From contig NZ_JMCB01000009.1 in the NCBI RefSeq assembly GCF_000737315.1, positions 1 through 64,000 on the forward strand: DNA of 64,000 nt. The letters run 5' to 3'. The translations under genes were made by a program, and so were the position numbers. The notes under the pieces are model-generated. The model searched no databases. It saw only the letters and a program-made list of their open reading frames with translations, and had not been told where the DNA came from. The stretch's first letter is position 1, and each line of letters starts with the position of its first letter. The DNA comes from Hyalangium minutum. GTDB lineage: Bacteria > Myxococcota > Myxococcia > Myxococcales > Myxococcaceae. Shown here piece by piece: positions 7,010-52,211 of the stretch.

Positions 7010-8740
7010 ATGCGGGAGGATGGACGGAACGTGCCCTCGACCCACAACAAGAAGAAAGGTCCACGGCTGGCTGAAGTCGTGGCGCTCCGTCCCCATCTCA
7101 AGACGAAGAAGGAGCCGCCCAAGAAGCCCGCCAAGCCCCTTCCTCCCGTGGAGCCCGACGCCGCGGAGAAGGCCCTGCTCGAGATGGTCCGGCAGCTGAC
7201 CACCAGCGCCAGCACCACCGATGTGCTGCGCGCCTACCTGCAGACCCTCTTCAACCTCCTCAAGCCCAAGGTCTGCTACGTCGCCCGCTACTTCCCCGAG
7301 CGACAGAACCTCCACGTCGAGCACGTCCGCGGCCGCTATGACGAGCGCGTCACCGCCGCCATCCCCGATGAGGGCGTGGTGGGCCGCGCCTTCTCGCAGA
7401 ATGCCGTGCTCCGCGAGGACGAGACCGTGGTCGTCCCGCTCGAGAACCCCCAGGGCGTCACCGGGTGCCTGGCCATCATCGGGCCCCGCCGCGAGGCCTC
7501 CGAGTCGCTGCTGCGCACGCTGGCGGGCCAGCTGTCCGCCGCCTACGAGGTGGCGCGCCTGAGGGATGACTCCGCCCGCCGCAACAAGGATCTCCAGACG
7601 GCCATCGCCGGCCTCAAGAGCCTGGAGCAGCACCGCGAGGAGCTGCTCGGCAACGTCTCGCACGACCTGAAGAACCCGCTCACCACCATCAAGGCCTACA
7701 TGGCCATGGTGGGCCGAGAGAAGCTGGGCCCTCTCACTGACGCCCAGCGCAAGGCCCTGCAGACGTGCGACCGGAACGCGGACCGCATGCTGCGCATGGT
7801 GAACGACTTGCTGCTCATGTCCCGGCTCCAGTCCGGGAAGATGCAGCTCAACCAGCGCCCCTTCGGCATCAAGGCCGTGGCCGAGGAGGTGCTGCGCAAC
7901 CTGGCCGCGCTCGCCGAGCACAGCAAGGTCCGCCTCCACGTCCCGCCCTGCACCGAGGTCTTCATTCGCGGCGATCGCGAGCGCATCGCCGAGGCCATCC
8001 ACAACCTCGTGGAGAACGGCATCCACCAGAGCGACGAGGGCGGCACCGTCGAGGTCCGCGTCTCCGCCGAGGACGGGCTCGCCGCGCTCTCCGTGAAGGA
8101 CAGCGGCCCGGGCCTCTCTCAAGAGGACCTGGAGAACATCTTCGATCCGTTCTACCGCGCCCGCTCGGGCCCGGCCCGCCCCGTGGGAGGCCGCCTGGGC
8201 CTGCCTCTGGTGTCCAAGATCCTCGCGCTCCACGGCGGGCGCGTGGATGCCACCAGCACCCTTGGTGAGGGCTCCACCTTCCAGATGGTGCTCCCCATGT
8301 TCGCCGGGGCCGTCAGCACGCCGGACGTGAACCAGGCCGCGCCTCGCGCCGGTGGCATCCTCCTCGTGGAGGATGACGCGGACTGCCGTGAGGTGCTCCA
8401 GCAGGTGCTCGAGCAGGAGGGCTACCGGGTCATGTCCACCTCGGGCGCCGCCGAGGCCCGCTCCGTCCTCTCGCACATCCGCCCGGCCATGGTGCTGTTG
8501 GATCTCCGCCTGAGCCAGGAGGATGGACGCTCGGTGCTGCACTACATCCGCTCCACCGAGTCCCTGGCGGACATCGTCGTCTACATCATCTCCGGCGCCA
8601 GCGAGGTGGCCTCGCTCTCCGCAGGCCAGGGTGTGGACCGGATCGACGGGTTCTTCGAGAAGCCACTCCAGCTCCCTCGGGTGCTGGACACCGTGGCGTC
8701 CGTGGTCCGGCCCAGCCGCCGCAACCCGGCCCCGTCCTGA
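7010..8740 (+). CDS. Hybrid sensor histidine kinase (GAF-like input, HisKA, HATPase, C-terminal receiver)
   Basis: H-box VSHDLKNPL, N-box NLVENG, G1 DSGPGL, F-box IFDPFY; receiver ILLVEDD...VLLDL...FEKP. No transmembrane segment seen. Confidence 0.92.
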   Translation: MREDGRNVPSTHNKKKGPRLAEVVALRPHLKTKKEPPKKPAKPLPPVEPDAAEKALLEMVRQLTTSASTTDVLRAYLQTLFNLLKPKVCYVARYFPERQNLHVEHVRGRYDERVTAAIPDEGVVGRAFSQNAVLREDETVVVPLENPQGVTGCLAIIGPRREASESLLRTLAGQLSAAYEVARLRDDSARRNKDLQTAIAGLKSLEQHREELLGNVSHDLKNPLTTIKAYMAMVGREKLGPLTDAQRKALQTCDRNADRMLRMVNDLLLMSRLQSGKMQLNQRPFGIKAVAEEVLRNLAALAEHSKVRLHVPPCTEVFIRGDRERIAEAIHNLVENGIHQSDEGGTVEVRVSAEDGLAALSVKDSGPGLSQEDLENIFDPFYRARSGPARPVGGRLGLPLVSKILALHGGRVDATSTLGEGSTFQMVLPMFAGAVSTPDVNQAAPRAGGILLVEDDADCREVLQQVLEQEGYRVMSTSGAAEARSVLSHIRPAMVLLDLRLSQEDGRSVLHYIRSTESLADIVVYIISGASEVASLSAGQGVDRIDGFFEKPLQLPRVLDTVASVVRPSRRNPAPS

Positions 8741-8828: not shown

Positions 8829-11381
8829 GTGGAGACTGCGGTGGCTCAGACTGCGAACCCGACAACGGTCTCGCTGAAAGAAGAGTTCGGACCCATCTCC
8901 CGGTGGCTGGGGGCTCGCTACTTCGACGGGGTCCACTTCCCCCCGGAGTCCGAGGACGAGCTGCGCGCCCTCCACGCCAAGGGGTTCGTGGTCCACGTCA
9001 TGCGCTCCACGGCGTGGATCAACTTCCTCTACATCGCCTGGGCCATGGTGCGCCGCGCCCTGCCCCCCATCCGCGCCGTGGTCAACCTGCGGCCCTGGTT
9101 CACCCGCCCCTTCCGCAAGACGGCCCAGCGCGGTGACTTCGATGTGCGCTTCACCTATGCCCGGCGCCACGGCGGCAGCGGCCTCATCTTCCTGAAGAAG
9201 ACGGCGCTGATGAACCCCTCGGGCAAGGACATCGAGGAGAACCCCTTCCCCGCCCTGGTGGCCATGGCTCGCAAGGGGGACCGCAACGTCCTGCTCGTGC
9301 CCGAGCTGTTCGTCTGGGAGAAGCGCTCCGCGCGCATCAAGCCCGGCATCATGGACATCGTGTTCGGCAGCCCCGAGGCCCCGGGCTTCCTGCACTCCAT
9401 GGTGGCCTTCTTCCGCAACTACCGCCGCGCCCAGTTCCGCATGGGCGAGCCCATCGATCTGCAGCGCTTCATCGCGGAGAACCCTCAGGACTCGGACGAA
9501 GTCATCGCTCGCAAGGTGCGCAGCGCCCTGCACCACCACCTGGCCCGTGAGACGCGCGCCGTGTTCGGACCGCCTCTCAAGCCCACCGAGCGGCTCATCG
9601 ACGAGACGATGCGCGATCGCCAGCTGCACAAGGCCCTGGATGCGCACGCCGCCTCCGTGAGCCGCCGCCCCGAGAGCGTCTACCGCGAGGCTCGCCGCAA
9701 CCTGGCCGCCATTGCCGCGCGTCCGAGCCCCACCACCCTGGCCTTCGCCTCGCCCGTGCTGGACTGGATCTTCCAGCGCATCTACGACGGCATCGAAGTG
9801 GATGAGGGCGGCCTCCACCGCGCCCTCAAGCAGGCCGGCCACGCGCCCATCGTCCTGTGCCCCTCGCACAAGAGCCACGTGGACTACCTGGTGCTCAGCT
9901 GGGTGCTCTGGAACCGCGGCTATGCCGTGCCCCTGGTGGCCGCCGGCGCCAACCTGTCGTTCTGGCCGCTCGGGCCCTTCCTGCGGCGCTGCGGCGCGTT
10001 CTTCCTGCGGCGCTCGTTCAAGGGCGACCCGATCTACTCCGAGTCCTTCCAGGCCTACGTGCGCAAGCTGGTGCTCGACGGCGTGCACCAGGAGTTCTTC
10101 CCCGAGGGCGGCCGCTCCCGCACCGGCAAGCTGCTGCCCCCCAAGCTGGGCATGTTCACCTGGCAAGTCGACGCCGTGCTGGGCGGCGCTCGCAAGGATC
10201 TGACCTTCGTCCCCGTCTCCATCGACTACGAGAAGGTGGTGGAGTCCGGCAGCTACTCGAAGGAACTGGCCGGTGGGGAGAAGAAGCCCGAGGACCTCAA
10301 GGCCCTGCTCAGCGCTCCCAAGGTGCTCACCGCGCGCTATGGCCGCATCCACCTGACCTTCGATGAGCCGCTCTCGCTCGCGGAGCTCATGAAGAGCCGC
10401 GGACTCACCCCGGGCGAGCCGGTGAACGAAGAGCAGAAGAAGGGCCTGGTGCGTGCGCTCGGCAACCGGGTCATGTACGGCATCAGCAAGGTGTCCACCG
10501 TGACGCCGCACGCCCTGGTGAGCGCGGCCCTGCTGGCCCACCGCCGCCGCGGCATTACTCAGCGCGAAGTGACGGATCGCATCACCCTGCTCCGCCGCAT
10601 CGCCGAGGAGGAGCGCACCCCGCTCTCCAAGACGCTGCAGAACGCCCCGAGCGATCCCGAGACGATGGGCGCCATCCGCGACGCGCTCCAGACGTTCCGC
10701 GCGGATGGGATGCTCCGTACCCAGCAGGCTCGCGGCGAGGTCATCTACCAGCCCGAGGACGAGCGCCGCGCGGAGCTGTCCTTCTACAAGAACACCTTGA
10801 TGAACCTGGTGGTGCCTCGCAGCCTGGTGGCCAATGCGCTGCTGGCCGGGGCCCCCGCCTCCTACGAGATCGTAAAGGGCCGCGCGCTGTTCCTCTCGCG
10901 CCTCTTCAAGGTGGAGTTCATCTACCGGGTGGGTGCCACCTTCGACACCATCTTCTCGGAGACGGTGGAGGCCCTGGTGCGCCTGGGCCTCGTGCTGCGC
11001 TCGGATGACACCCTCCAGCTCGCCCCCGAGGCCCATGCCCGGCCCGCACTGGAGTTCCTGGCGGACCTGCTGCGCGATTACCTGGAGTCCTACCTGCTGG
11101 CCGCGATGACGCTGAAGGACGTGGCCGACGGCATGGTCTCGGACCGCAAGGCCTTCGTGAAGTTCGCGATGGAGACCGGCCGCGCTGAGTTCCATGCCGG
11201 CCGCATCGGTGCCGCCGAGTCCCTGGCCAAGACGACGCTGGAGAACGCCGTGGCGTACCTCATCGACCAGAAGTACCTCGTCGAGGAGGACAAGAAGCTC
11301 AAGCTGGGCCCGGCCGGTACCGAGCCCAGCGCGCGGGAGCAGCTCGCCAACGACATCCGCCTCTACCTGCAGCGCACGTGA
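8829..11381 (+). CDS. plsB: Glycerol-3-phosphate O-acyltransferase
   Basis: HX4D motif (CPSHKSHVDY), GAFFLRRSF and FFPEGGRSRTGK blocks; GGAGG RBS before GTG. Confidence 0.88.
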   Translation: METAVAQTANPTTVSLKEEFGPISRWLGARYFDGVHFPPESEDELRALHAKGFVVHVMRSTAWINFLYIAWAMVRRALPPIRAVVNLRPWFTRPFRKTAQRGDFDVRFTYARRHGGSGLIFLKKTALMNPSGKDIEENPFPALVAMARKGDRNVLLVPELFVWEKRSARIKPGIMDIVFGSPEAPGFLHSMVAFFRNYRRAQFRMGEPIDLQRFIAENPQDSDEVIARKVRSALHHHLARETRAVFGPPLKPTERLIDETMRDRQLHKALDAHAASVSRRPESVYREARRNLAAIAARPSPTTLAFASPVLDWIFQRIYDGIEVDEGGLHRALKQAGHAPIVLCPSHKSHVDYLVLSWVLWNRGYAVPLVAAGANLSFWPLGPFLRRCGAFFLRRSFKGDPIYSESFQAYVRKLVLDGVHQEFFPEGGRSRTGKLLPPKLGMFTWQVDAVLGGARKDLTFVPVSIDYEKVVESGSYSKELAGGEKKPEDLKALLSAPKVLTARYGRIHLTFDEPLSLAELMKSRGLTPGEPVNEEQKKGLVRALGNRVMYGISKVSTVTPHALVSAALLAHRRRGITQREVTDRITLLRRIAEEERTPLSKTLQNAPSDPETMGAIRDALQTFRADGMLRTQQARGEVIYQPEDERRAELSFYKNTLMNLVVPRSLVANALLAGAPASYEIVKGRALFLSRLFKVEFIYRVGATFDTIFSETVEALVRLGLVLRSDDTLQLAPEAHARPALEFLADLLRDYLESYLLAAMTLKDVADGMVSDRKAFVKFAMETGRAEFHAGRIGAAESLAKTTLENAVAYLIDQKYLVEEDKKLKLGPAGTEPSAREQLANDIRLYLQRT

Positions 11382-11399: not shown

Positions 11400-11837
11400 T
11401 CACAGGCCCGTGCGGAACGGGACGCGGACTTCCTCGGTGAGCGCGTTGCCCTCGTAGTCGGAGAGGATCGTCCGCAGCACCAGCGTGAAGGAGGCATTCG
11501 GGGTGAACGCCCCCGAGGTCGCCCTCACCTTCACGGTGTACGGGATGTCTCCACCCTCGACGTTCCCAGAGCCATCGGTCGGCGCGGGCACGGTGATGGT
11601 CAGGGGCACCTCGTCGCGGCCGGAGAACACGGCGATCCCGGGGCGCAACGTGCGCACATCCATGAACTCCGAGAAGGTGATCTCCAAGCTCCCGTCCGAG
11701 GCGATCTGCCCGCTGGCAACGGGCTCGGTGGACTGGACCTCGGGCGGATCCGTATCCCGGACGGCGAGCACCGGATCGCCGGGATCCAAGCACCCGGCGA
11801 GGCTCAGGAAGGCACAGGCGGTCAGCAGGCGGCGCAT
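11400..11837 (-). CDS. Lipoprotein with a bacterial Ig-like (SbsA/Big_5-type) domain
   Basis: Lipobox LSLAGC after MRRLL; PPEVQSTEP...LEITFSEFMD pattern. ATG overlaps the TGA of the cytochrome gene at 11837. Confidence 0.75.
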   Translation of the reverse strand: MRRLLTACAFLSLAGCLDPGDPVLAVRDTDPPEVQSTEPVASGQIASDGSLEITFSEFMDVRTLRPGIAVFSGRDEVPLTITVPAPTDGSGNVEGGDIPYTVKVRATSGAFTPNASFTLVLRTILSDYEGNALTEEVRVPFRTGL

Positions 11838-13012
11838 CACCGGCACCCCTTCTGGGCGAGACTGGTCTCCGAGTGGCACTTCAAGCACGCGCGATCATTG
11901 GCCGCCGCGAGCTTCTTGCAGTTGCTCGCGAAGCCGGTCGGGTGCGGGTTGATCTGCTGGCGCTGCGAGGTCTCCGCGTGGCAGCTGATGCAGGTCTCCT
12001 CGCGGTGGCAGGCGGCGCACTGGCGGATGTCCCGCGAGGCGACGATTCCGTGGTGCTGCGGCCCGGGGATCTGCACCCACGTGGCGTAGTCCGGGTGCAC
12101 CTTGGCGTTGCGCGGCCTTAAGGACGAGTCCGCGTTCATGCCCACGCCCACCCGCTCGTGGCAGGCGGCGCAGAAGGACTGGAGCCGGTGGCAGCTCTCG
12201 CACCGCTGGGCGTCCGTGCGCGCCTGGAGCGGGTGCAGCGTGATGAAGTCGTTGGGGTGCACCGACAGCGGCTTCTGCAGGGCGTCGTGGCACTTCGCGC
12301 AGTACGCATCCGAGTGACACTGGCTGCACGTCTGCCGCGACACCGAGGCGCGCGGGCCGTGGTTGAACTCGAAACGCGGGCCGTGGTCCAGGCCCAGCGG
12401 ATCCCCCTGCATGGGCCTCAGGATGCCGGAGGCGAAGTTGAGCTGCAGCCGCCCCGAGGCCTCCGTCAGGTGGCACGTCTTGCAGTCGTTCGGGGCCTGC
12501 TTGCCGTCATGGCACTCGAAGCAGGTCGCCATCTTGGGCAACTGCTGCCGCGTGGCCAGCTGCACCTTGGTCATGTCCCCGTGGCACGTGGCGCACTCCA
12601 CCTTCTTCTCCAGGTGGACCTTGTGGGTGAACTTCAGGTTGGCTGAGGGCAGCTCCAGCTTCGCGGGCTCCTTGCGCACCGTGGCGTCGAAGCCCGGGTG
12701 GCACGTGCTGCAGCTGGCCGGCGGATCCGTCTTCTGCCCCTTCTGGGCGGCCTCGATGTCGTGGCAGGTCTCGCACTCCTCGTGGCCAGGGAGGTTGCGG
12801 TCCTTGGGGGACTCGCTCTTGCTGACGGAGTCGTGGCAGGTGGCGCACTCGGCGCCCGCTTCCAGGTGCTGCGCGTGGTCGAAGCGCAGCGGGATGTTCT
12901 GCGCGGGGTAGATCGCGAGGCTCCGCTCGCGGCCCGAGGCGGCCCAGGCCACACCCGCCACGGCGAGGGAGAGGGCGAAGAAGCCCAGTGCGTTCCGAAA
13001 CTGGCGGTCCAT
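11837..13012 (-). CDS. Periplasmic multiheme c-type cytochrome, 13 CxxCH motifs
   Basis: Sec signal (ALGFFALSLAVAGVAWA); hand count of 13 CxxCH; c3/c7-type FxHxxH motifs. Confidence 0.92.
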   Translation of the reverse strand: MDRQFRNALGFFALSLAVAGVAWAASGRERSLAIYPAQNIPLRFDHAQHLEAGAECATCHDSVSKSESPKDRNLPGHEECETCHDIEAAQKGQKTDPPASCSTCHPGFDATVRKEPAKLELPSANLKFTHKVHLEKKVECATCHGDMTKVQLATRQQLPKMATCFECHDGKQAPNDCKTCHLTEASGRLQLNFASGILRPMQGDPLGLDHGPRFEFNHGPRASVSRQTCSQCHSDAYCAKCHDALQKPLSVHPNDFITLHPLQARTDAQRCESCHRLQSFCAACHERVGVGMNADSSLRPRNAKVHPDYATWVQIPGPQHHGIVASRDIRQCAACHREETCISCHAETSQRQQINPHPTGFASNCKKLAAANDRACLKCHSETSLAQKGCR

Positions 13013-14419
13013 CTAGAGATTCGCCTTCAGATCGAAGAGGAAGAACGCCTTGGTGTCCGAGCGGGTGAACGGGTTGACGTTCTGCTCGAGCACCAGGGAG
13101 ACGCGGGCTGCAGGGGTCAGCATGCGGCTGGCCCAGAGCTGCGCCCCGAAGAAGTTGCCCCGAAGCTGGGGGTTGAATTCGTCGTCGACGTGCGCCACGG
13201 ACAGCCGCGCATCCAGATCGAGGAGGTTCGCGTCGAAGCTGTAGCCGCCCGTCAGGTCCACCCAGAGCTGGTTGCCGCCGAAGCCGGTCCGGTACGTCAC
13301 GTCCAGCGCCGAGCGGAGGCTGCCCCGCCGCAGCGAGGTGCCCACGGAGCCGCCCACGTTCGTCGAGGAGGGAGCGTCCTCCGAGTCCACGAAGTTCGCC
13401 AGGCCCAGGTTCTCGTTGATGTTGGTGTGGTACAGGCTGCCCAGGGCCTGCACGTAGAAGCGCAGCGGGCCCACCGGGTAGAAGTCGGCGCGCGCCCGCA
13501 CCTCATCCCGAGGCGCGAAGGCGAAGTAGTACCAGATGGAGTTGGTGGAGAAGACCGGCGTGAAGCGCAGCGCCTGCGCGCTCACGGCGAACAGCTCGCG
13601 ATCCAGACGGACCTCGATGCGCGCCTGGGCCGGCGTGAGCTGGAGCAGATCGAGATCCACCCCCGCCACCGCGTTCACCCCGAGCCCTCGCCCGTAGCGG
13701 AGCTCCAGGGCCGCGCGCTCCAGGTCCGTCTTCCCGTCCAGCAGCGACTTGCGGTAGCCGAGCGAACCGCTGAAGCCCTTCAAGCTCCCGAACAGCAGCT
13801 TCGCGCCGTAGACGGGCTGGATGGCATTCAGACTCTCGTCGGCGCCCACCACGCCCTGCTCCAGCCGCCGCGAGTCGCTCTCGCGCGTGCCGTCCGGCTG
13901 GTACGCCGACGAGGACAGGAACCCCGAGCCCTTCACCCACAGACCGCCGTACGCCTCGACGCCGACGCCGAACCGCGACATGTACCGCAGCCGCAGCCCA
14001 TCGAAGGCCATGATGTCCATCGAGTCGGTGTAGAGCTGGCGCCCCAACCGGCCCTCGAAGCCGCCGTTGGCGTAGCGGGCGTAGGCGTACTGGAGATCCG
14101 CGTCCTCGCTGCGCAGGCCGTCGATCTTCTCGGCCTCGCCTCGCGGCAACCCAAAGTCCGCGAAGACGCGCAGGCTGGACTCGAAGCCCAGATCCTGCCC
14201 GGTGACCAGCTCGAAGGCGTTGAGGCCCAGATACTGGACGATCCGCCGCCGAGGCAGCAGCACCACGTCATCCGGTGTGGTGCCGCGCCACGCGCGGATC
14301 TGATACGCCTGTGCCTCGGTCCGCGCCTCGATCTGTACGGCTGCGGCCCAAGCCGGCTCGGCCGCTCCCAACGCCACCGCCAGGCCCAGGGCCCAAAGGG
14401 CGGGCGCGGCACCCCTCAT
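13013..14419 (-). CDS. Predicted outer-membrane beta-barrel protein (porin-like)
   Basis: Signal peptide (ALWALGLAVALGAAEPAWA); alternating aromatic/hydrophobic strands with many Y/F/G; C-terminal AFFLFDLKANL strand. Its TAG abuts the cytochrome ATG. Alternative starts at 14449 and 14476. Confidence 0.75.
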   Translation of the reverse strand: MRGAAPALWALGLAVALGAAEPAWAAAVQIEARTEAQAYQIRAWRGTTPDDVVLLPRRRIVQYLGLNAFELVTGQDLGFESSLRVFADFGLPRGEAEKIDGLRSEDADLQYAYARYANGGFEGRLGRQLYTDSMDIMAFDGLRLRYMSRFGVGVEAYGGLWVKGSGFLSSSAYQPDGTRESDSRRLEQGVVGADESLNAIQPVYGAKLLFGSLKGFSGSLGYRKSLLDGKTDLERAALELRYGRGLGVNAVAGVDLDLLQLTPAQARIEVRLDRELFAVSAQALRFTPVFSTNSIWYYFAFAPRDEVRARADFYPVGPLRFYVQALGSLYHTNINENLGLANFVDSEDAPSSTNVGGSVGTSLRRGSLRSALDVTYRTGFGGNQLWVDLTGGYSFDANLLDLDARLSVAHVDDEFNPQLRGNFFGAQLWASRMLTPAARVSLVLEQNVNPFTRSDTKAFFLFDLKANL

Positions 14420-14461
14420 GCTGCTCTGCGCTCGATCCAGGAAGGACATCAAAGTGGCGGC

Positions 14462-14467
14462 ATTATA
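14462..14467 (-). promoter_or_regulatory. Perfect -10 hexamer (TATAAT) upstream of the barrel-cytochrome operon
   Basis: Plus-strand ATTATA in an AT-rich patch; only a weak -35 (TGAAAT, 18-bp spacer). Confidence 0.45.
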
Positions 14468-14529
14468 AGGAGACACGCCTCGGAGATTTCACGGTTTTCG
14501 CGCGCCTTTTTGTGAGTGAGGAGATCACG

Positions 14530-15750: not shown

Positions 15751-15963
15751 CTAGACGAACCGGTACGAGGACACGTCGAACACCGGCCCCACCATCTGGG
15801 CCGTCATGACGTCGGCGACCTGGCCTTCGACTTCGATGCGCTGACCGTCCTTCTTGATTTTCCGATCTCCACCGGCGAGCTGATACGTGCGGCCATCATC
15901 GCCCTCGAGGACCCAGACGCCACCCTCGAGATCCCGGTAGACGACGCGCCCGGTCAGCTTCAC
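15751..15963 (-). CDS. Small (70 aa) beta-rich protein, possibly OB-fold/DUF5818-like
   Basis: KLTGRVVYRDLEGGVWVLEGDDGRTYQL; GTGA overlap with the subtilase stop. It is the C-terminal part of track ORF 15751..16464. Confidence 0.65.
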   Translation of the reverse strand: MKLTGRVVYRDLEGGVWVLEGDDGRTYQLAGGDRKIKKDGQRIEVEGQVADVMTAQMVGPVFDVSSYRFV

Positions 15964-17768
15964 GGCGTCTCCTTCTTGAGCATCGCACGAGCGATGAAGA
16001 CGCTGATGATCGCGTTCACCACGAGCCACGGCATGGCCAGGAAGGTGAAGGGCATGTACGCGAGCCCCGGAGCCTTGGACCAGGCCGCGTAGCTCAGGAA
16101 GCCCGCGAAGCCGAGCGCCAGGCCGCCAATGGCCGGCCGCAGCCCGCGGAACTTGATGGCGAAGAACGAGAGCACCACCGGGATGAGAGCGCTGTAGAAG
16201 AGCGGGTTGGCCAACTTGCCGCGGCCGAAGATGATGCGCTGCCAGTCGGGAATCGGCAGCCACAGGGCGTCCACCCCGTCCCCGCTCGCCCCCGCGGCCC
16301 CGCCGAACCACGAGCGAGCGAAGAACATGCCCACGGTGGCCAACACCAGCGGCACCACGAAGCTCGGCTTGAAGATCAGGTTGAGGTAGCCCGGGCGCTC
16401 GCGGCGGCCCAGCGTCAGCAGCACCACCGCCAGCAGCACCAGCGCCCACCAGAGCGACGGCCACTGCGTCCCCGGAGTGGCCCCGATCGCCTCCAGCGAG
16501 GCCTTCGCGTTGAGCAGGCCGTGGCCGTACTCCTCCGACCAGGCCTGGCCGTTCACGCGCTTGGCGCCCGCGAAGAGCGCCTTCTCCACCTCGTCCGGAC
16601 CGCTGGCGCCCGCTGCGTACAGGAGCGCCGCCACCGCCGCCACGTGCGGAGTGGCCATGCTGGTGCCCTGGTACGAGGCGTACACCGAGCGCGACACATC
16701 CTTCGGATCGATCGTGTTCTGGATGATGCCGTTCTGGTCACCCTTGCGCTTGTCACCGCCCGGCGCCGCGATATCCAGGTCCTTGCCGTAGGACGAGTAC
16801 GGAGCGCGCGTGCCCTCCGGACCCACGGCGGCCACCGCCACCGCGCCCGGGTACGCCGCGGGGAACTCCACGCGCCCACGGCCCGCGTTGCCTGCCGCTG
16901 CCACCACCGTCGTGCCCTTCTTGCGCGCGTACTCCACCGCCGAGGCCATGGCCGGCGAGTACCCGCCGCCGCCCAGCGACATGTTGATCACCTTGGCGCC
17001 CTTGTCCGCCGCGAAGCGGATGGCATCCGCGATGTCCGCCGAGGTGCCGCTGCCGAAGTGGTTGAGCACCTTCACCGGCATCAGCGTCGCCTCGAAGGCC
17101 ACGCCCGCCACGCCCTCGTTGTTGTTCGTCGCCTGGGCGATGGTGCCCGCCACGTGCGTGCCGTGGCCGTGGTCGTCGTTGGCGTGCTCGTCGTCGTTCA
17201 CGAAGTCATAGCCGGTGACGAACTTCACGCCCTTCAGGTCCGGCACCTGCTTGAAGTCGTCGTAGTCCTCGTAGGCGATGCCCGTGTCGAGCACCGCCAC
17301 CACCACGCCCTTGCCCTTGCTGGTGTCCCAGGCCTTGGGCATGTCGATCATCTGCAGGTTCCACTGCTTGCCGTAGTCCGGATCATTCGGCGTGAAGCTG
17401 GAGCGGAACTGCATCAGGGGCTCGGCGTACTCGACGGCGGGGTTCTGACGGATGCGCGCCAGCGCGCTCTCCACGTCATCCACCCCCACCGCGACGGTCA
17501 TGCCGTCGTCCTGGCCTTCGATGGAGTTGAACTCGAGGTCCACACCCCACTCGGCCTCCCAGGCGTCGAACTGTTCCTTGGTGGTGCCGTCCTTGAAGTC
17601 CACCAGGATGCTGCCCGGCACCAGATCCGCGCCGGTCAGGTCCAGCCGCTCGGGCTGCGTGGCCGGCTCGGCCGAGGCAGGCACCTCCTTCTGGGAAGAG
17701 CAGGCCGCGGTCGCGACTACGACCAGGGCCACCACCGCGTTCGCCAGGATCCTTCGCATCGTCTGCAC
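15960..17768 (-). CDS. S8 subtilisin-like serine protease with a C-terminal multi-pass membrane domain
   Basis: Catalytic triad VAVLDTG / HGHGTHVAGT / GTSMATPHVA; lipoprotein-like signal (ATAAC); propeptide region; about 4-5 hydrophobic helices after the catalytic domain. Confidence 0.93.
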   Translation of the reverse strand: MQTMRRILANAVVALVVVATAACSSQKEVPASAEPATQPERLDLTGADLVPGSILVDFKDGTTKEQFDAWEAEWGVDLEFNSIEGQDDGMTVAVGVDDVESALARIRQNPAVEYAEPLMQFRSSFTPNDPDYGKQWNLQMIDMPKAWDTSKGKGVVVAVLDTGIAYEDYDDFKQVPDLKGVKFVTGYDFVNDDEHANDDHGHGTHVAGTIAQATNNNEGVAGVAFEATLMPVKVLNHFGSGTSADIADAIRFAADKGAKVINMSLGGGGYSPAMASAVEYARKKGTTVVAAAGNAGRGRVEFPAAYPGAVAVAAVGPEGTRAPYSSYGKDLDIAAPGGDKRKGDQNGIIQNTIDPKDVSRSVYASYQGTSMATPHVAAVAALLYAAGASGPDEVEKALFAGAKRVNGQAWSEEYGHGLLNAKASLEAIGATPGTQWPSLWWALVLLAVVLLTLGRRERPGYLNLIFKPSFVVPLVLATVGMFFARSWFGGAAGASGDGVDALWLPIPDWQRIIFGRGKLANPLFYSALIPVVLSFFAIKFRGLRPAIGGLALGFAGFLSYAAWSKAPGLAYMPFTFLAMPWLVVNAIISVFIARAMLKKETP

Positions 17769-44406: not shown

Positions 44407-45501
44407 ATGCCACTCGCGCCCAGTGTCCTCCTGATCGTGTTGGCCACGGCCGCCGCGGCCCCGCAGGCCGATGCGCCTCTGTCCACCCCTCCGCTGCCGT
44501 CCAGCTCCGACACGTGCGCCACCGCCGAGGCCGACTACACCCGGGGCTTCGACGCGCTCGTCGCGGGCGATGATCACTCGGCGCTGGAGGCGTTCGAGCA
44601 CGTCCTCGCCGCCTGCCCCACCCACCCCTACGCCGGAGAGCTCGCCCGGCTCACGCGCACTCGGCTCGGCCCGGGCGCGAAGCTGGCCGAGGCGGCGCTC
44701 CTCATCGCTCCTGAAAAGCCCTCGGGCTTCGCGCGCGGAAGCCTCGTGGTCTGGCAGACCGGGCACGGCGCGACGCAAGGTGCCCTGCTGTGCGGCATCA
44801 TCGATTGTGATGGCCGCGGCTACCTCGCCGCTTCGCTCCTGGGAGCGGGAGTGGGCGCCGCAGTCTCCTTATATGCGACGCATGAGAACGGGGTGACGTC
44901 GGGCCAGTCGGCCGCCATCAACTCGGGGACGACTTGGGGCGTCTGGTATGGACTGGCCGCCACCCAGGTCTTCGACATCGACGACGAGAGCGCGCTTGCC
45001 ACCGTCATGGGCAGCACGCTGAGCCTGACCGGCGCCGGGATTGCCGTGGCCCTGCTGACCCACCCCACCGCAGGCCAGGTCTCCCTGGCCAACTCGGGCG
45101 GGCTTTGGAGCGGCGTGATCACCGCGCTGATCCTCGCCGCCGCCGGGGATGGCGAGCGGAGCGCCTTCTTCGCGATCGAGTCCGTGGTGACGGGGGTGGG
45201 CATCACCTCCTTCGCGGTGCTCTCGCAGTCCCTGCCAGTGTCTCGAGGCAGGATGCTGCTGATCGACTCGGGCGGCATCCTCGGAGGCCTGCTGGGAGCG
45301 GCCACCGTCGCCCTGCTCGGCGCGAATGACGGGGAACCCATCGCCATTGGAGCGGCGGTGGGCGCGGTCGGTGGGCTGGCCCTCACCGCCTATATCACCC
45401 GCGACTTCGACGGCCCCTCCACCCCGGCGCCAGAGGTAGCGGTCGCCCCCACCGTCATGGGCCGAGGCGGCGTGGGCCTCGCGCTGGGTGGCCGCTTCTA
45501 G
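44407..45501 (+). CDS. Exported Gly/Ala-rich membrane protein with three internal repeats
   Basis: Signal peptide; TPR-like helix pair bracketed by two Cys; three units of about 55 aa, [ST]xG[QR]xxxx[ND]SG; ends GVGLALGGRF. Confidence 0.7.
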   Translation: MPLAPSVLLIVLATAAAAPQADAPLSTPPLPSSSDTCATAEADYTRGFDALVAGDDHSALEAFEHVLAACPTHPYAGELARLTRTRLGPGAKLAEAALLIAPEKPSGFARGSLVVWQTGHGATQGALLCGIIDCDGRGYLAASLLGAGVGAAVSLYATHENGVTSGQSAAINSGTTWGVWYGLAATQVFDIDDESALATVMGSTLSLTGAGIAVALLTHPTAGQVSLANSGGLWSGVITALILAAAGDGERSAFFAIESVVTGVGITSFAVLSQSLPVSRGRMLLIDSGGILGGLLGAATVALLGANDGEPIAIGAAVGAVGGLALTAYITRDFDGPSTPAPEVAVAPTVMGRGGVGLALGGRF

Positions 45502-45556
45502 AAGGCACGGCTTTCGCTGGAGAAAGGGGCGATTTCCGGGTACGAACCCCGTCCCG

Positions 45557-46222
45557 ATGGACGCCCCTGCCCCCGCCTCGCCTCCGGCGATCGCCCTGCA
45601 TGACGTGAGCAAGCGGTATGGGCGTCATTGGGCTCTGGCGCGACTCACCTACTCGCTGCCCGCGGGCCGCTCGCTCCTCCTCACCGGCCACAACGGCTCC
45701 GGGAAGACCACGCTGCTGCGCCTGGTGGCCACCGCCCTCTCGCCCACCGCGGGCCGCGTCGAGGTGCTCGGCCGCAACACCGTCTCGGATACGAACGCAG
45801 TGCGTCAAGAGGTTGCCCTCCTTTCCCACGCCAGCTTTCTTTACGAGGACCTCACCGCGCACCAGAACCTCGTGGTGCTCGCCCGCCTGCTGGACCTGCC
45901 CTCCCCGAAGGACGTCGCCGACCAGCTGCTGACGCGCGTGGGGCTGACGCGGCGGACCGAGAGCCCCGTGCGCCAGTTCAGCGCGGGCATGCGCAAGCGC
46001 CTGGCCATCGCGCGGCTGGTGATGAAGAAGCCCGCCATGGCGCTGCTGGACGAGCCCTTCGGCGAGCTGGACCCGGCAGGCATCCAGGCCATGGAGGGCA
46101 TCATCGGCGAGCTCAAGGCCTCGGGTGTCACCGTCGTCCTGGCCACCCACCTCATCGAGCAGGGGCTGACGCTGTGTGAGGAGCGCCTTCACCTGCAAGA
46201 AGGCCGGGCGGTGCCCGCATGA
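45557..46222 (+). CDS. ccmA: Heme export ABC transporter ATP-binding subunit
   Basis: GHNGSGKTT, FSAGMRKRL and LLDEPF. Confidence 0.93.
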   Translation: MDAPAPASPPAIALHDVSKRYGRHWALARLTYSLPAGRSLLLTGHNGSGKTTLLRLVATALSPTAGRVEVLGRNTVSDTNAVRQEVALLSHASFLYEDLTAHQNLVVLARLLDLPSPKDVADQLLTRVGLTRRTESPVRQFSAGMRKRLAIARLVMKKPAMALLDEPFGELDPAGIQAMEGIIGELKASGVTVVLATHLIEQGLTLCEERLHLQEGRAVPA

Positions 46223-46914
46223 GCCGCCCCCGTCCCGCGGGCCTGCTGAAGGCCGCCGCCATCCTGCTCGGCAAGGATCTGCTCATCGAGTGGCGCACCC
46301 GGGCCCGGCTCAACGCCCTGGTCTTCTTCGCGCTCTCCACGCTGCTGCTCTTCTCGTTCGCGCTGGGTCCGGACACCAAGCTGCTCGAGCGCAACGCGGG
46401 CGGCTACCTCTGGCTGGCCATCCTCTTCGCCAGCACCCTGTCCCTGGGTGAGTCCTTCCGGGTGGAGTACGAGAACGCCTGCATGGACGGCCTGCGGCTG
46501 GCCCCGGCGGACGCTCGGGCCATCTTCCTGTCCAAGGCGGTAGGCAACACCCTGCTGCTCGTCCTGCTGGGCAGCCTGCTCATCCCCGTCATGGTGGCCC
46601 TCTACGGGGTGAAGGTGGTCCTGGGAGTAGGCGATCTGATGGCTACCCTCGTGCTTGGCTGCATGGCGCTCGCCGCCCCGGGGTGCGTGTATGCAGCCAT
46701 CGCCAATAACGCCCGAGCGAGGGACGTGCTCCTACCTCTGCTATTGTTCCCGCTGATTGTTCCGGCCCTGCTGGCCGCGACCAAGGCCATGGCGCTGGTG
46801 CTCCAGGGCGATCCGATGGATCAGCTCGGCTCTTGGTTCGGTCTGCTGGGAGGGTTCAACCTGATCTATTGGGGCTTAGGCTTCCTGCTCTTCCCGCGGG
46901 TGATCGAGGACTGA
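46219..46914 (+). CDS. ccmB: Heme export permease
   Basis: KDLLIEWR, six TM helices, LLPLLLFPL; ATGA overlap. Confidence 0.92.
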   Translation: MSRPRPAGLLKAAAILLGKDLLIEWRTRARLNALVFFALSTLLLFSFALGPDTKLLERNAGGYLWLAILFASTLSLGESFRVEYENACMDGLRLAPADARAIFLSKAVGNTLLLVLLGSLLIPVMVALYGVKVVLGVGDLMATLVLGCMALAAPGCVYAAIANNARARDVLLPLLLFPLIVPALLAATKAMALVLQGDPMDQLGSWFGLLGGFNLIYWGLGFLLFPRVIED

Positions 46915-46916
46915 CG

Positions 46917-47684
46917 ATGTTCATTCTCACCACGGCCGTACTGCCTGGAGTCATCCTGCTCCTGCTGCTCACGGTGGGCCGCAAGTACGCCCACCTGACG
47001 CTGCCGGTCTACGCGCTCATCGCCCTGGGAATCGGCCATGGGGTGGGCCTGTTCGTGGCTCCTCCGGACCGGGAGATGGGCGACGTGCAGCGCATCATGT
47101 ACGCGCATGTTCCTGCCGTGTGGGCTGCGCTGGTGGCGCTGGTGATCAACTTCGGGTGCTCGGTGGCGTACCTCTTCAAGCAGAGCTGGAGGACGGACTC
47201 GCTGGCGGAGGCCTCCGCCGAGGTGGGTCTGCTGTTCGGCGCGGTGGGGGTGCTGCTGGGCGCCATCTGGGGCCGGCCCACCTGGGGTGTGTACTGGACG
47301 TGGGATCCCCGGCTCACCACCGCCGCCATCCTCCTGGTGGCCTACATGGGCTACATGGCCCTGCGCCGCTTCGTGGAGGACCCGGACAAGCGCGCCACGT
47401 GGAGCTCCGTGGTGGGCATCATCGCCGCGGTGGACCTGCCCATCATCTGGTTCTCGGTGAAGTGGTGGCGCAGCCTGCACCAAGTGCAGTCCACGCCCCG
47501 GACGGTGGACCCGGCGTTCCAGCTTCCCCTTCGCCTCAGTTCCTACGCATTCCTGGGCCTGGCGGCCCTCTTCATCCTCCACCGCTACCGCATCGCCATG
47601 GCGGAGCGGAAGGCGGAGGTGGCCCTCCCCGAGGCGCTGCCCACGGATGGCGCCCAGCAGAACCGCACCGCGGGGGTGGCGTGA
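46917..47684 (+). CDS. ccmC: Heme chaperone loader CcmC
   Basis: IMYAHVP and the Trp-rich WGRPTWGVYWTWDPRLT motif; LHQ. Confidence 0.93.
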   Translation: MFILTTAVLPGVILLLLLTVGRKYAHLTLPVYALIALGIGHGVGLFVAPPDREMGDVQRIMYAHVPAVWAALVALVINFGCSVAYLFKQSWRTDSLAEASAEVGLLFGAVGVLLGAIWGRPTWGVYWTWDPRLTTAAILLVAYMGYMALRRFVEDPDKRATWSSVVGIIAAVDLPIIWFSVKWWRSLHQVQSTPRTVDPAFQLPLRLSSYAFLGLAALFILHRYRIAMAERKAEVALPEALPTDGAQQNRTAGVA

Positions 47685-47863
47685 TGAGCTCGCTGATGCT
47701 GTGGGCCCAGGTGGCCGCGGGAGAAGTGGGCAGCGGCCGGATTACCGGCGGCTGGGGCTATGTGTGGGCCAGCTATGGCATTACCTGGGGCGCCTTCAGC
47801 CTCTATGCGTTATCGCTGTGGCTGCGCCGACCCAAGAACCTGCCTGCAGGATCCAAGGAGTGA
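47684..47863 (+). CDS. ccmD: Heme exporter protein CcmD
   Basis: 59-aa ORF with YVWASYGIT and one TM helix between ccmC and ccmE; TGATG overlap. Confidence 0.8.
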   Translation: MSSLMLWAQVAAGEVGSGRITGGWGYVWASYGITWGAFSLYALSLWLRRPKNLPAGSKE

Positions 47864-47870
47864 ATGAGCC

Positions 47871-48359
47871 ATGACCCCTGTTACCCGTAACCGACTCATC
47901 GCCGTGGGAGCCCTGCTGGTGGCCGGTGTTGGCCTGGCCTTCGTGGCCTTCGGTAACATCGGCGAGAACCTCGTCTATTACTGGAGCCCGGCGGAGATGC
48001 TGACCCAGGGCGAGAAGGCCTACGGCCCCACCATCCGCCTGGGCGGCGTGGTGAAGCCCGGCTCCATCCAGTGGAACGCCGAGCACACCACCCTGCACTT
48101 CCAGGTGGCCACCGACCACACGCCGCAGTCCGTGGCGGTGACGGTGCGCTCCACCGAGGTGCCTCCGCAGATGTTCCGTGAGGGCATCGGCGTGGTGGTG
48201 GAGGGCACCTTCGACAAGTCGCAGGTGTTCAGCTCCAACCGGCTGATGGTGAACCACTCCAACGAGTACCGCGCGCCCAAGCCGGGCGAGGAGCCGCGCA
48301 AGTGGCAGGAGACCGTCGAGGGCTCCACCACGGCAGCGAACACGACGGGGGCGCAGTGA
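47871..48359 (+). CDS. ccmE: Heme chaperone CcmE
   Basis: YYWSP, IRLGGVV, PQMFREG and HxxxY (HSNEY). Confidence 0.93.
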   Translation: MTPVTRNRLIAVGALLVAGVGLAFVAFGNIGENLVYYWSPAEMLTQGEKAYGPTIRLGGVVKPGSIQWNAEHTTLHFQVATDHTPQSVAVTVRSTEVPPQMFREGIGVVVEGTFDKSQVFSSNRLMVNHSNEYRAPKPGEEPRKWQETVEGSTTAANTTGAQ

Positions 48360-50380
48360 ACGCAACGATTGGATACGGGCTCGTGCTGGGGGCGCTGGTG
48401 TGCGCCGCCTTCGGGGCCGTGGTGGGACTGACGAGCGGCCTGCGCCAGAGCGAGGCGGGCTCTCAGTGGGTGCGCCGCGCGGTGTGGGGCTTCTTCCTCT
48501 GCATGGTGGGCTCCAACCTGACGATGGTGTACTCGCTCGTCACGGATGACTTCAGCATCAAGTACGTGGCGCAGGTGGGCAGCCGCGCCACGCCGCTGAC
48601 CTTCAAGATCGTCGCCCTGTGGAGCGCGCTGGAGGGGTCCATCCTCTTCTGGGGCCTCATCATGGGCACCTACCTGCTGGCCTTCGCGCTGGTGCACCGC
48701 AACGAGCACAAGCGCTACATGTCGCTGGCGCTGGGCACCATGCTGGGCGTGGGCGTCTTCTTCGCCTTCCTGATCGCCGGCCCGGCCAACCCCTGGCACA
48801 CGCTGTCTCCCGTGCCGCTGGACGGCCCCGGCCCCAACCCGCTCTTGCAGAACCACATCCTCATGGTGGTCCACCCGCCCATGCTCTACCTGGGCTACGT
48901 GGGCATGACGGTGCCTTTCGGCATCGCCGTCGCGGGCCTGCTGCGCGGAGAGATTGGCGACGCGTGGATGGCACCCCTGCGGCGGTGGATCCTCATCCCG
49001 TGGCTGTTCCTGTCCATCGGCATCATCCTGGGCTCGTGGTGGGCGTACGCGGTGCTGGGCTGGGGCGGCTACTGGGCGTGGGATCCGGTGGAGAACGCCT
49101 CGTTCCTGCCGTGGCTGACGGCCACCGCCTTCATGCACTCCACCATGGTCCAGGAGCGCAAGCAGATGCTCAAGCTGTGGACCATGAGCCTGGCCCTGGC
49201 CAGCTTCGTGCTGACGATCCTCGGCACGTTCATGACCCGCTCGGGCATCTTCAACTCGGTGCACTCGTTCACCCAGTCGGACATCGGGCCCACCTTCCTG
49301 GTGTTCATCGCCATCCTGCTGGTGCTGTCCATCGCGCTGCTGGCCACGCGCGGCCACCTGCTGGTGTCCCAGGGCCGCATCACCTCCATGGTGTCTCGTG
49401 AGACGAGCATCCTGGTGAACAACCTGGTGTTCGTGGCCATCACCTTCACGGTGCTGCTGGGCACGCTCTACCCGCTCATCTCCGAGGCCGTGCGCGGCAT
49501 CCGCGTGAGCGTGGGCGAGCCGTACTTCAACAAGATGGCGGTGCCCGGCGGCATCGCGGTGCTGTTCCTCATGGGCGTGGGCCCCATGCTCCCGTGGGGC
49601 ACTCCGGACAAGGACGCCGTGCGGCGGCAGTTCATCATCCCCGCTTCCACGGGCGCGGTGGTGGCGCTGGTGTGCTACCTGGCCGGGCTGCGCGGCTTCT
49701 ACCCGCTGCTCACCTTCGGGCTGGCCGGCTTCGTCACCGTCATCACCCTGCGCGAGCTGCTCGCTCCGGTGCGCGTGCGCATGACCGAGCGCAAGGAAGG
49801 GCTCGTCACCGCCGTGGTCCAGAGCGCCTCCAAGGCCCGGCGCCGCTTCGGCGGCTACGTGGTGCACCTGGGCATCATCATCATCATCGTGGCGGTGGCG
49901 GCCTCCTCCGCGTACGTGACGCACACCTCCGGCACGCTGCGCCCGGGCGAGACGCTGACACTCAGTGGCTACACGCTCAAGTACCTGGGCACGAAGGAAG
50001 GCCAGGAGCCCCACCGCACCTATATGGCGGCGCGCGTGGAAGTCACGACGCCCAGCGGCAAGGTCGAGGAGTACCAGCCCCGGCTCAACTACTACGAGCG
50101 CAGCACGGATCCCGTGGGCACGCCCGCGGTGCGCGAGTCGGCCAAGGAAGACCTGTACATGTCGCTGATGGCCTTCACCCAGGGCGGCACCACCGCGAGC
50201 CTCAACGTGTGGGTTTTCCCGCTGGTGGGGTGGATCTGGTACAGCATCCCCATCCTGGTGCTGGGCACACTCATCTCGCTCTGGCCCTCTCGCAAGCGCG
50301 TGGCGGTGGCCTCGAGTTCCACGGCCGCGGGCGCCGCACCGCCGGTGGCCGGCAGTGACATGAACCGGGGTGCCGCATGA
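48356..50380 (+). CDS. ccmF: Cytochrome c synthetase (heme lyase) CcmF
   Basis: LWSALEGS, NPLLQN, HPPMLYLGY and GSWWAYAVLGWGGYWAWDPVEN; GTGA overlap. Confidence 0.95.
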   Translation: MNATIGYGLVLGALVCAAFGAVVGLTSGLRQSEAGSQWVRRAVWGFFLCMVGSNLTMVYSLVTDDFSIKYVAQVGSRATPLTFKIVALWSALEGSILFWGLIMGTYLLAFALVHRNEHKRYMSLALGTMLGVGVFFAFLIAGPANPWHTLSPVPLDGPGPNPLLQNHILMVVHPPMLYLGYVGMTVPFGIAVAGLLRGEIGDAWMAPLRRWILIPWLFLSIGIILGSWWAYAVLGWGGYWAWDPVENASFLPWLTATAFMHSTMVQERKQMLKLWTMSLALASFVLTILGTFMTRSGIFNSVHSFTQSDIGPTFLVFIAILLVLSIALLATRGHLLVSQGRITSMVSRETSILVNNLVFVAITFTVLLGTLYPLISEAVRGIRVSVGEPYFNKMAVPGGIAVLFLMGVGPMLPWGTPDKDAVRRQFIIPASTGAVVALVCYLAGLRGFYPLLTFGLAGFVTVITLRELLAPVRVRMTERKEGLVTAVVQSASKARRRFGGYVVHLGIIIIIVAVAASSAYVTHTSGTLRPGETLTLSGYTLKYLGTKEGQEPHRTYMAARVEVTTPSGKVEEYQPRLNYYERSTDPVGTPAVRESAKEDLYMSLMAFTQGGTTASLNVWVFPLVGWIWYSIPILVLGTLISLWPSRKRVAVASSSTAAGAAPPVAGSDMNRGAA

Positions 50381-50934: not shown

Positions 50935-50961
50935 ACCCCTGGACGCGGAGGCAAGCGAGCC

Positions 50962-52113: not shown

Positions 52114-52211
52114 GCGGCCATACAGCCAGGGGCCGGCCGGGAAGATGGGCGCACCGGTGCAGGTTTCGCTGTGCAACACTGCGCCTTGGCGCTAGGTAGA
52201 CCGCGCCCGGG

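Follow-up and report, generated by a model that had tools for sequence, protein, structure and literature searches.

A putative two-gene porin-cytochrome conduit in Hyalangium minutum and other Myxococcota

A 64-kb stretch of the Hyalangium minutum genome (contig NZ_JMCB01000009.1, about 68% G+C; hereafter, the window) contains an operon of three minus-strand genes encoding, in this order, a 468-aa outer-membrane beta-barrel protein, a 391-aa cytochrome with 13 CXXCH motifs, and a 146-aa Big_5 lipoprotein. Since the barrel and cytochrome genes were found adjacent to each other across distantly related Myxococcota, the pair is probably an electron wire across the outer membrane, and we favor the reading that the operon encodes a porin-cytochrome complex, in which the cytochrome would be sheathed by the barrel. 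Conduits of this kind constitute the known route by which Gram-negative bacteria pass electrons to and from minerals, electrodes and partner cells and, to our knowledge, they have been studied almost exclusively in dedicated metal reducers and iron oxidisers. The closest named relatives of the window proteins belong to Hyalangium (88% identity), followed by other Myxococcaceae/Archangiaceae. A previous sequence-only reading of this DNA had proposed a trans-outer-membrane conduit built from the three products; the wide barrel model, the 13 invariant heme sites and the barrel-cytochrome adjacency speak for that proposal, whereas the lipoprotein falls outside the core and the barrel displayed no kinship with MtrB/PioB.

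Operon anatomy and encoded proteins

The barrel gene (13013-14419, minus strand) ends in a TAG codon (13013-13015) that directly abuts the ATG (13012) of the cytochrome gene (11837-13012, minus strand), and the TGA codon of the latter has one base in common with the ATG of the lipoprotein gene (11400-11840, minus strand; gTGATGc), in agreement with the zero gap and the 1-nt overlap that had been read at these junctions. The operon is flanked by a convergent plsB-type acyltransferase gene (8829-11381, plus strand) and by a divergent gene for a CAAX/Rce1-like protease. Export signals had been claimed for all three proteins, and we likewise recognized two Sec-type signal peptides and one lipobox, assigned by eye. 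The open reading frame (ORF) of the barrel spans 13013-14476 (minus strand), with its signal-peptide start at the ATG at 14419; the signal peptide comprises residues 1-25 (14345-14419) and ends between AEPAWA and AAVQ, and a longer GTG start, with the ORF extended to 14476, would read through the conserved TATAAT element described below. The cytochrome carries a Sec signal peptide in residues 1-24 (12941-13012), ending between GVAWA and ASG, and no lipobox. The lipobox of the third protein lies at L13-C16 (11793-11804), with the C following LSLAG and a mature N-terminus C-L-D-P-G-D, whose Leu at position +2 would fit outer-membrane sorting by the usual rules.

A perfect TATAAT, a -10-like hexamer already pointed out ahead of the operon, is located at 14462-14467 (minus strand), 43 nt upstream of the barrel ATG, and is the sole TATAAT of the window (0.34 expected per window). 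TATAAT or TATACT was seen by eye at the same upstream distance in 22 of 24 printed orthologous regions (18 and 4, respectively) from Hyalangium, Archangium, Cystobacter, Vitiosangium, Myxococcus, Pyxidicoccus and Corallococcus. A consensus scan upstream of the barrel gene retrieved no acceptable -35; thus, a complete sigma-70 promoter is not established, and it is the -10 element alone that displays a phylogenetic footprint. In the leader 3' of the TATAAT (14419-14470, minus strand), a block GCC-N(4-5)-ACTTTGA-N-G-N-TCTTCC-N-GG is kept in Hyalangium, Archangium, Cystobacter and Vitiosangium, with a related block, CCTTGACGTCCTTCATCCTGGCTCGA, in Myxococcus, Pyxidicoccus and Corallococcus; this block could be an operator or leader element. 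An Rfam search of the operon and its leader returned nothing meaningful.

The 468-aa protein had been predicted to fold as a wide barrel, and AlphaFold2 accordingly modeled 22 strands (counted with DSSP); this count rests on one good model of five, together with the indel pattern. The best model, obtained from a 38-sequence alignment, reached a predicted local distance difference test (pLDDT) value of 79 and a predicted template modeling score (pTM) of 0.68, and its long connections (9, 15, 40, 17 and 22 residues) alternate with turns of 2-5 residues on the opposite face, so that every long connection would face outward if the N-terminus were periplasmic. Across 46 members of the barrel family, down to about 25% identity, indels fall mainly between predicted strands, with one exception, an insertion of about 7 residues within predicted strand 10. 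The best-conserved regions of the barrel are two long loops rather than strands. The first contains the motif QPDGTRESD (residues 174-182; 13874-13900, minus strand), in the loop of 40 residues that joins strands 7 and 8, where D176, G177 and R179 show little or no variation in the close alignment A1, and the D-G pair is invariant in the distant alignments A2 and A3. The second (residues 287-303, TPVFSTNSIWYYFAFAP; 13511-13561, minus strand) carries the motif P-x-F-D-x-D-S-I-[FW]-N-x-F and is the most conserved segment of the family, with a mean column conservation of 0.62 and no gaps in the 46 sequences; its P, F, S and I are invariant in A2 and A3. Both loops fall below a pLDDT of 50 (residues 165-179 and 290-300), which would fit a conformation that depends on a partner. 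The barrel had no match in Pfam or NCBIfam at E<=0.1, and its family profile (alignment A1) matched no Protein Data Bank (PDB) chain at E<=1; a Foldseek search of the model against the PDB returned generic barrels only, with template modeling (TM) scores of 0.35-0.51, including Campylobacter MOMP, the FimD and PapC ushers, OccK/OprD porins and AlgE.

The second protein had been read as a 13-heme cytochrome, and indeed it contains exactly 13 CXXCH motifs, invariant in 37 close and 45 distant relatives. Pfam assigned Cytochrome_C7 to two stretches of it (67.1 bits, cut-off 24.8). Residues 37-181 (12470-12904, minus strand) correspond to two c7-like triheme units (hemes 1-6) that also resemble the pentaheme ActA subunit of Alternative Complex III, with c7 and triheme matches in Pfam and NCBIfam; those to the NCBIfam c7 and triheme 'nanowire' domains are below the trusted cut-offs (TIGR04257, 37.7 bits, cut-off 40). 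Residues 172-277 (12182-12499, minus strand) match the pentaheme domain II/IV of MtrC/MtrF (PF22113, E = 3e-13, 50.1 bits, cut-off 30). When the cytochrome profile (alignment A4, 37 homologs) was compared with the PDB, the best match was ActA (6lod_A, E = 4e-17, residues 44-170), followed by 8k9e_A, 6btm_A and 6f0k_A, and then by PpcA-type c7 cytochromes.

Eleven histidines outside these motifs (His46, 49, 130, 133, 210, 218, 252, 260, 306, 321 and 357), as well as Met161, are 100% conserved in 46 cytochromes, namely the window protein and 45 distant relatives that are 35-43% identical to it. In addition, His77 (12782-12784) is invariant in Myxococcaceae-level cytochromes and is the expected distal ligand for the third heme of the first c7-like unit. 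The window cytochrome therefore holds 13 candidate distal ligands for its 13 hemes, a signature of a hexacoordinate electron-transfer chain rather than of an enzyme, and no catalytic domain is present in it. Position 77 is Glu in nearly all Polyangia-type cytochromes, which leaves just 12 invariant candidate ligands for 13 hemes there, and one of these hemes may be differently ligated or open. Two cysteines outside the CXXCH motifs, Cys365 (11918-11920) and Cys390 (11843-11845), one of them in the C-terminal G-C-R end, are also 100% conserved in the 46 cytochromes and may form a disulfide fixing the C-terminal tail.

An N-terminal half that most resembles c7 cytochromes of the periplasm and the ActA subunit of Alternative Complex III, along with the aerobic life of the hosts and the fact that no surface cytochrome is encoded, would also suit a periplasmic carrier, that is, a long c7/ActA-like wire serving aerobic or microaerobic respiration or a periplasmic reductase, with the barrel as a separate diffusion or uptake channel for a soluble redox substrate; both proteins would then belong to one pathway, but the cytochrome would stay outside the barrel. 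We consider this unlikely: a catalytic partner is linked in no clade, a shared substrate alone poorly explains a strict pairing with one barrel family at 25-31% identity, the plug-less 22-strand barrel exceeds the width of the 16-18-strand diffusion porins on which it superposes, and the best-conserved barrel parts are loops rather than a typical pore-lining eyelet.

Conservation of the barrel-cytochrome pair

At E<=1e-3, an exhaustive search with the barrel profile retrieved 406 cluster representatives. No pattern could be derived from alignment A2 because its 37 sequences diverge too far, and a subset of 10 (A3) was taken instead; its pattern, containing the P-x-F-D-x-D-S-I-[FW]-N-x-F motif, was scanned over metagenome contigs, which gave 80 loci whose barrels are 25-31% identical to that of the window. 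For 53 of these loci at least 1.25 kb of downstream sequence was available, and in 52 of them the barrel is followed, in the same orientation, by a gene with 12-13 CXXCH motifs (12 instead of 13 in some, such as L071, L082 and L087), with an estimated ORF start within about 400 nt of the barrel end and mostly within about 15 nt. The exception, L086, has 9 and 3 CXXCH motifs split over frames and looks frameshifted. At least two CXXCH motifs are already visible in 13 of the 14 loci that end 0.3-1.25 kb downstream. The distant loci range from 0.50 to 0.73 in G+C and have soil, rhizosphere and marine sources among them; the named relatives of a large soil clade are Polyangia metagenome-assembled genomes (MAGs), and for 30 distant representatives the only names are those of 'Deltaproteobacteria bacterium' and 'Proteobacteria bacterium' MAGs. 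Furthermore, pairwise identities of barrel and cytochrome over 81 pairs are correlated (r = 0.98 overall, 0.66 among deep pairs), which indicates that both genes are inherited as a unit, a correlation that does not by itself show contact between their products.

No third neighbor is conserved across the clades of distant loci, and a conserved third partner was rejected, given the heterogeneity of the neighboring genes (peptidase M15, DsbA-like, amine oxidase, a 252-aa protein and a MopE-repeat protein). In 39 Polyangia-type loci (e.g., L112, 4207-4965), the gene immediately 5' of the barrel, in the same orientation, encodes a protein of about 252 aa that has a single predicted membrane helix and matches nothing in Pfam, and a peptidase M15 (DUF882) protein is often found 3' of the cytochrome in the Polyangia-type soil clade; these two may be clade-specific accessories or merely local synteny.

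It could be argued that the linkage is meaningless, reflecting inherited gene order among related genomes, with the barrel being an unrelated outer-membrane protein; in fact, all named relatives are Myxococcota, UniRef names three barrel orthologs 'alginate export domain' proteins, and AlgE is among the Foldseek matches (TM about 0.4). We regard this explanation as very improbable, since the pair stays near-abutting while all other neighbors differ between clades, Pfam Alginate_exp is unmatched at E<=0.1, and AlgE has 18 strands versus the 22 modeled here.

Regarding the third gene, its product was described from the sequence as a heme-free Ig-like lipoprotein, and this description holds: no CXXCH occurs in it, and Pfam assigned it to Big_5 (E = 3.8e-9). 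Tblastn matched the lipoprotein in 41 loci; 28 of these yielded a reading frame with a lipobox and a mature N-terminus of the form C-L-[ED/V]-[PAV]-, and the other 13 yielded no usable frame or no lipobox. Only in Myxococcaceae/Archangiaceae was this gene seen 3' of the cytochrome, and the 80 distant metagenome loci gave no relative of the Big_5 lipoprotein. The conserved core is therefore made of two genes, not three, and the proposal that the lipoprotein stands in for a terminal cytochrome is not sustained for the ancestral system, this protein being instead a lineage-specific accessory. Likewise, the anticipated co-conservation of the three genes stands for the barrel and cytochrome at the deep loci described above, but not for the lipoprotein, nor for one subclade in which the pair is unlinked.

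A closer set of relatives was obtained by a pattern scan with one genome per species, which gave 57 loci, all from Myxococcaceae/Archangiaceae or unclassified Myxococcales. Barrel, cytochrome and lipoprotein all match in 39 of them, and PlsB as well in 30 of these 39; the common order is S8 protease, CAAX protease, barrel, cytochrome, Big_5 lipoprotein and PlsB.

Comparison with described porin-cytochrome systems

The porins of the porin-cytochrome (Pcc) clusters surveyed by Shi, Fredrickson and Zachara (2014, PMC4245776), with BLAST E<0.01 as the similarity criterion, have 18-22 predicted strands. Two-gene clusters, made of a porin and a 12-14-heme cytochrome with no surface cytochrome, were described in that survey for Anaeromyxobacter, Ca. 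Kuenenia and Ignavibacterium, and their cytochrome was proposed to span the membrane alone; those of Anaeromyxobacter dehalogenans and Anaeromyxobacter sp. K, with cytochrome Adeh_3392, constitute phylogenetic Group IV and are predicted (PMC4245776). Hence, the idea is less novel than the sequence-only reading implied, as clusters of this composition had already been described (PMC4245776). On the best reading, the two-gene Pcc clusters of Anaeromyxobacter are the closest known kind, next to which the present pair is placed by description and not by sequence. The resemblance comprises a barrel whose 22 strands, according to the AlphaFold2 model and the indel pattern, lie within the 18-22 range, an adjacent secreted multiheme cytochrome (13 CXXCH, within 5-14) co-diverging with the porin (52 of 53 loci; r = 0.98), the shared phylum in the case of Anaeromyxobacter and, as in the two-gene clusters only, the absence of an outer-membrane multiheme cytochrome gene from the operon and from all related loci. 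Unlike the Anaeromyxobacter clusters, the present system has 13 hemes and an added heme-free Big_5 lipoprotein, and its hosts are aerobic, fruiting Myxococcaceae/Archangiaceae together with Polyangia, rather than a known metal reducer. What is new with respect to known Pcc systems is thus the arrangement of 13 hemes in c7/ActA-like and MtrC-like parts, the heme-free Ig-like lipoprotein confined to one family, and the aerobic, fruiting hosts. Our literature search retrieved no paper describing the barrel-cytochrome module in Myxococcaceae or Polyangia.

By description, the operon also resembles the OmbB-OmaB-OmcB, ExtABCD, ExtEFG and ExtHIJKL systems of Geobacter sulfurreducens, whose genes together encode a small porin-like barrel (about 20 strands), a multiheme cytochrome of the periplasm and a lipoprotein of the outer membrane; ExtHIJKL also includes non-cytochrome lipoproteins. 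In the Geobacter systems the lipoprotein is itself a cytochrome, with 12 hemes (OmcB) or 5, and its periplasmic partner carries 8, whereas here the lipoprotein is heme-free and there is one 13-heme cytochrome. With MtrCAB of Shewanella and with MtoAB and PioAB of iron oxidisers, the latter two being two-gene forms running inward, the present pair has in common the concept of a barrel-sheathed multiheme cytochrome and, with MtrC/MtrF, a pentaheme domain II/IV-like stretch, which is here placed inside the 13-heme protein. However, the MtrB/PioB barrel has about 700 aa and 26 strands in the structure (28 predicted), compared with 468 aa and 22 modeled strands here, and the Pfam family PF11854 (MtrB_PioB) did not match our barrel at E<=0.1; MtrA is a decaheme protein of the DmsE family, whereas our cytochrome has 13 hemes and scored 15.4 bits against TIGR03508 (cut-off 192). 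The surface decaheme lipoprotein of MtrC/OmcA type, optional in MtrAB, PioAB and MtoAB, has no counterpart either, the only lipoprotein of the operon being without CXXCH. A kinship of the barrel with MtrB/PioB was thus found neither by Pfam nor by the PDB profile search nor by Foldseek, and membership in the MtrAB/PioAB group is excluded because barrel family, size and heme count all fail.

The N-terminal half of the cytochrome, with its two c7-like triheme units, resembles the GSU1996 'nanowire' family, and the conserved M161 occupies the His-Met heme position in the second unit; the members of that family and ActA are, in contrast, periplasmic or inner-membrane-associated and have no partner barrel. 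Other candidate assignments were rejected as well. Identity with the ActA subunit of Alternative Complex III is contradicted by a similarity that is only local (residues 44-170), by the 13 hemes and by the lack of adjacent act genes; a Cyc2-type fused cytochrome-porin, by a barrel without CXXCH encoded in a separate gene; and an AlgE/alginate export barrel, by the lack of a Pfam match, a TM of about 0.4, the 22 modeled strands and the absence of adjacent polysaccharide genes. The marine ptd porin-cytochrome operon, with 5-, 4- and 10-heme proteins, is a different system.

A proposed two-part conduit and its implications

According to the mechanism that we propose, both core proteins would leave the cytoplasm via Sec, and the System I (ccm) machinery encoded in the window would attach the 13 hemes in the periplasm. 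The barrel would then insert in the outer membrane and form a physical complex with the elongated cytochrome, which would thread through and occupy its lumen; the conserved barrel loops between strands 7/8 and 13/14 probably fold into the lumen and would hold the cytochrome there. As for orientation, the c7/ActA-like six-heme N-terminal half would be periplasmic, receiving electrons from periplasmic or inner-membrane carriers, and the seven-heme C-terminal half, with its MtrC-like stretch, would extend to the cell surface, so that a separate surface cytochrome would be unnecessary. The ten hemes of MtrA cover about 8 nm and the twelve hemes of the c7-type GSU1996 about 12 nm; on these grounds, thirteen hemes could cross the outer membrane. 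In Myxococcaceae/Archangiaceae, the heme-free Ig-like lipoprotein, translationally coupled to the cytochrome, would act as an accessory, possibly as a dock, cap or stabiliser. With regard to direction, we lean slightly toward outward electron flow, which would serve to reduce Fe(III), Mn(IV) or humic acceptors outside the cell under limiting oxygen in swarms, biofilms and fruiting bodies, or to mobilise iron reductively; with inward flow, extracellular donors would be oxidised.

Several observations weigh against this proposal. On the structural side, the remaining four of the five barrel models score just 56-68, MtrB is absent from the best 50 Foldseek matches of the barrel model, and AlphaFold2 modeled the cytochrome poorly (pLDDT 58), for which reason no shape argument is drawn from that model; the Foldseek search with this weak model retrieved ActA alone, and weakly (6lod_A, E = 9e-4). 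In no clade is the pair linked to a gene for an inner-membrane quinol dehydrogenase or for another electron-transfer protein, and the cultured hosts are aerobes for which we know of no reported mineral respiration. Among the close relatives, one Myxococcaceae/Archangiaceae subclade appears to have barrel and cytochrome at different loci, paired by matching sequence clade (13 loci keep a barrel, about 50% identical, in place with no cytochrome detected there), and four Myxococcus genomes retain deletion remnants only (L044, L051, L056 and L057). The unlinked subclade and the losses in Myxococcus imply that the barrel-cytochrome pair is neither always linked nor indispensable.

In the unlinked subclade, which consists of MAGs, the barrels stay at the S8-CAAX locus (L030, L033-L042, L046, L052 and L144), and in those barrel-only loci with enough downstream sequence a bpMoxR-type AAA ATPase of about 840 aa comes next. 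The cytochromes of the matching clade (L139, L142 and L143) adjoin an 811-822-aa MopE-repeat, putative copper-binding protein near relA; at L139, which may belong to one assembly with L041 and L042, the Big_5 gene is still attached to the relocated cytochrome, with a 4-nt overlap, while the barrel lies elsewhere. The remnant-bearing Myxococcus are strains sp. 1LA, Y35 and RHSTA-1-4 and M. vastator, with fragments lying between the CAAX protease gene and plsB and corresponding to barrel residues 13-313, 20-165, 25-85 and 25-66, the third of which passes directly into lipoprotein residues 36-144. Four deletions with different end points indicate repeated loss of the operon within Myxococcus.

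The tolerance to unlinking in one subclade is also what might be expected if the barrel were an export or assembly pore, releasing the cytochrome to the surface or the matrix as a free or polymerised electron carrier, with the lipoprotein aiding release or anchoring. The cytochrome does contain a stretch of the surface-cytochrome type (MtrC/MtrF domain II/IV), and the best-superposing structures of the barrel are the 24-strand ushers FimD and PapC (TM 0.44-0.51). Such superpositions are, however, generic and of low TM, the barrel lacks a plug, a POTRA domain and the usher domains of either terminus, chaperone genes are not linked, and 1:1 adjacency with translational coupling better suits a stoichiometric complex; we thus hold export to be quite unlikely, and retain the sheathed conduit as the favored explanation. 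A more far-reaching version, which we find possible but doubtful, is that of a third and independent conduit lineage, kin to neither MtrAB nor the Geobacter Pcc systems and spread over Myxococcia, Polyangia and marine and soil clades, in which a chimeric 13-heme cytochrome would span a 22-strand barrel to the surface alone; if so, abundant, nominally aerobic, predatory or social soil bacteria would gain extracellular electron exchange, for iron mobilisation, for survival in swarms and fruiting bodies starved of oxygen, or for redox attack on prey.

Other genes of the window were considered for a link to the operon. A complete System I cluster (ccmA, B, C, E, F, G, x, H and I) lies at 45488-53695 (plus strand), where ccmI is a TPR ccmI-like gene and x, between ccmG and ccmH, encodes a 383-aa zinc-ribbon-like protein (50962-52113). 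A ccm system able to mature the cytochrome had been reported in the same window; it is indeed present, but as a generic maturation system with no specific operon link, and it was rejected as a specific partner because it is general and 31 kb distant. An S8 subtilase (15960-17768, minus strand) with the C-terminal membrane domain DUF5942, followed in relatives by a 71-aa DUF5818 protein (L140 and L144), remains syntenic with the barrel locus also in cases in which the cytochrome has been relocated; its link to the operon consists of local gene order alone. Some surface cytochromes of Geobacter are processed by subtilases. Upstream of plsB, at 7010-8740 (plus strand), lies a gene for a hybrid histidine kinase (HisKA, HATPase_c and receiver domains), which displays no sign of regulating the operon; at L140, a similar kinase is found downstream of PlsB, with an arginyl-tRNA synthetase gene in between.

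The barrel-cytochrome module is kept in many Myxococcota common in soil, including culturable genera for which laboratory strains are established (Stigmatella, Archangium, Cystobacter, Hyalangium and some Myxococcus), and the losses within Myxococcus, together with the unlinked subclade, provide natural comparisons ready to hand. A survey of lake metagenomes found that Myxococcota carry the largest number of unassigned putative electron-transfer cytochrome clusters (bioRxiv 10.1101/2022.03.26.485925); if the proposed conduit is correct, part of the unassigned multiheme cytochromes of Myxococcota from metagenome surveys would be explained (bioRxiv 10.1101/2022.03.26.485925). Structural and synthetic studies would likewise gain a minimal conduit of two proteins, and extracellular electron transfer would belong to the physiology of aerobic, predatory, fruiting bacteria.

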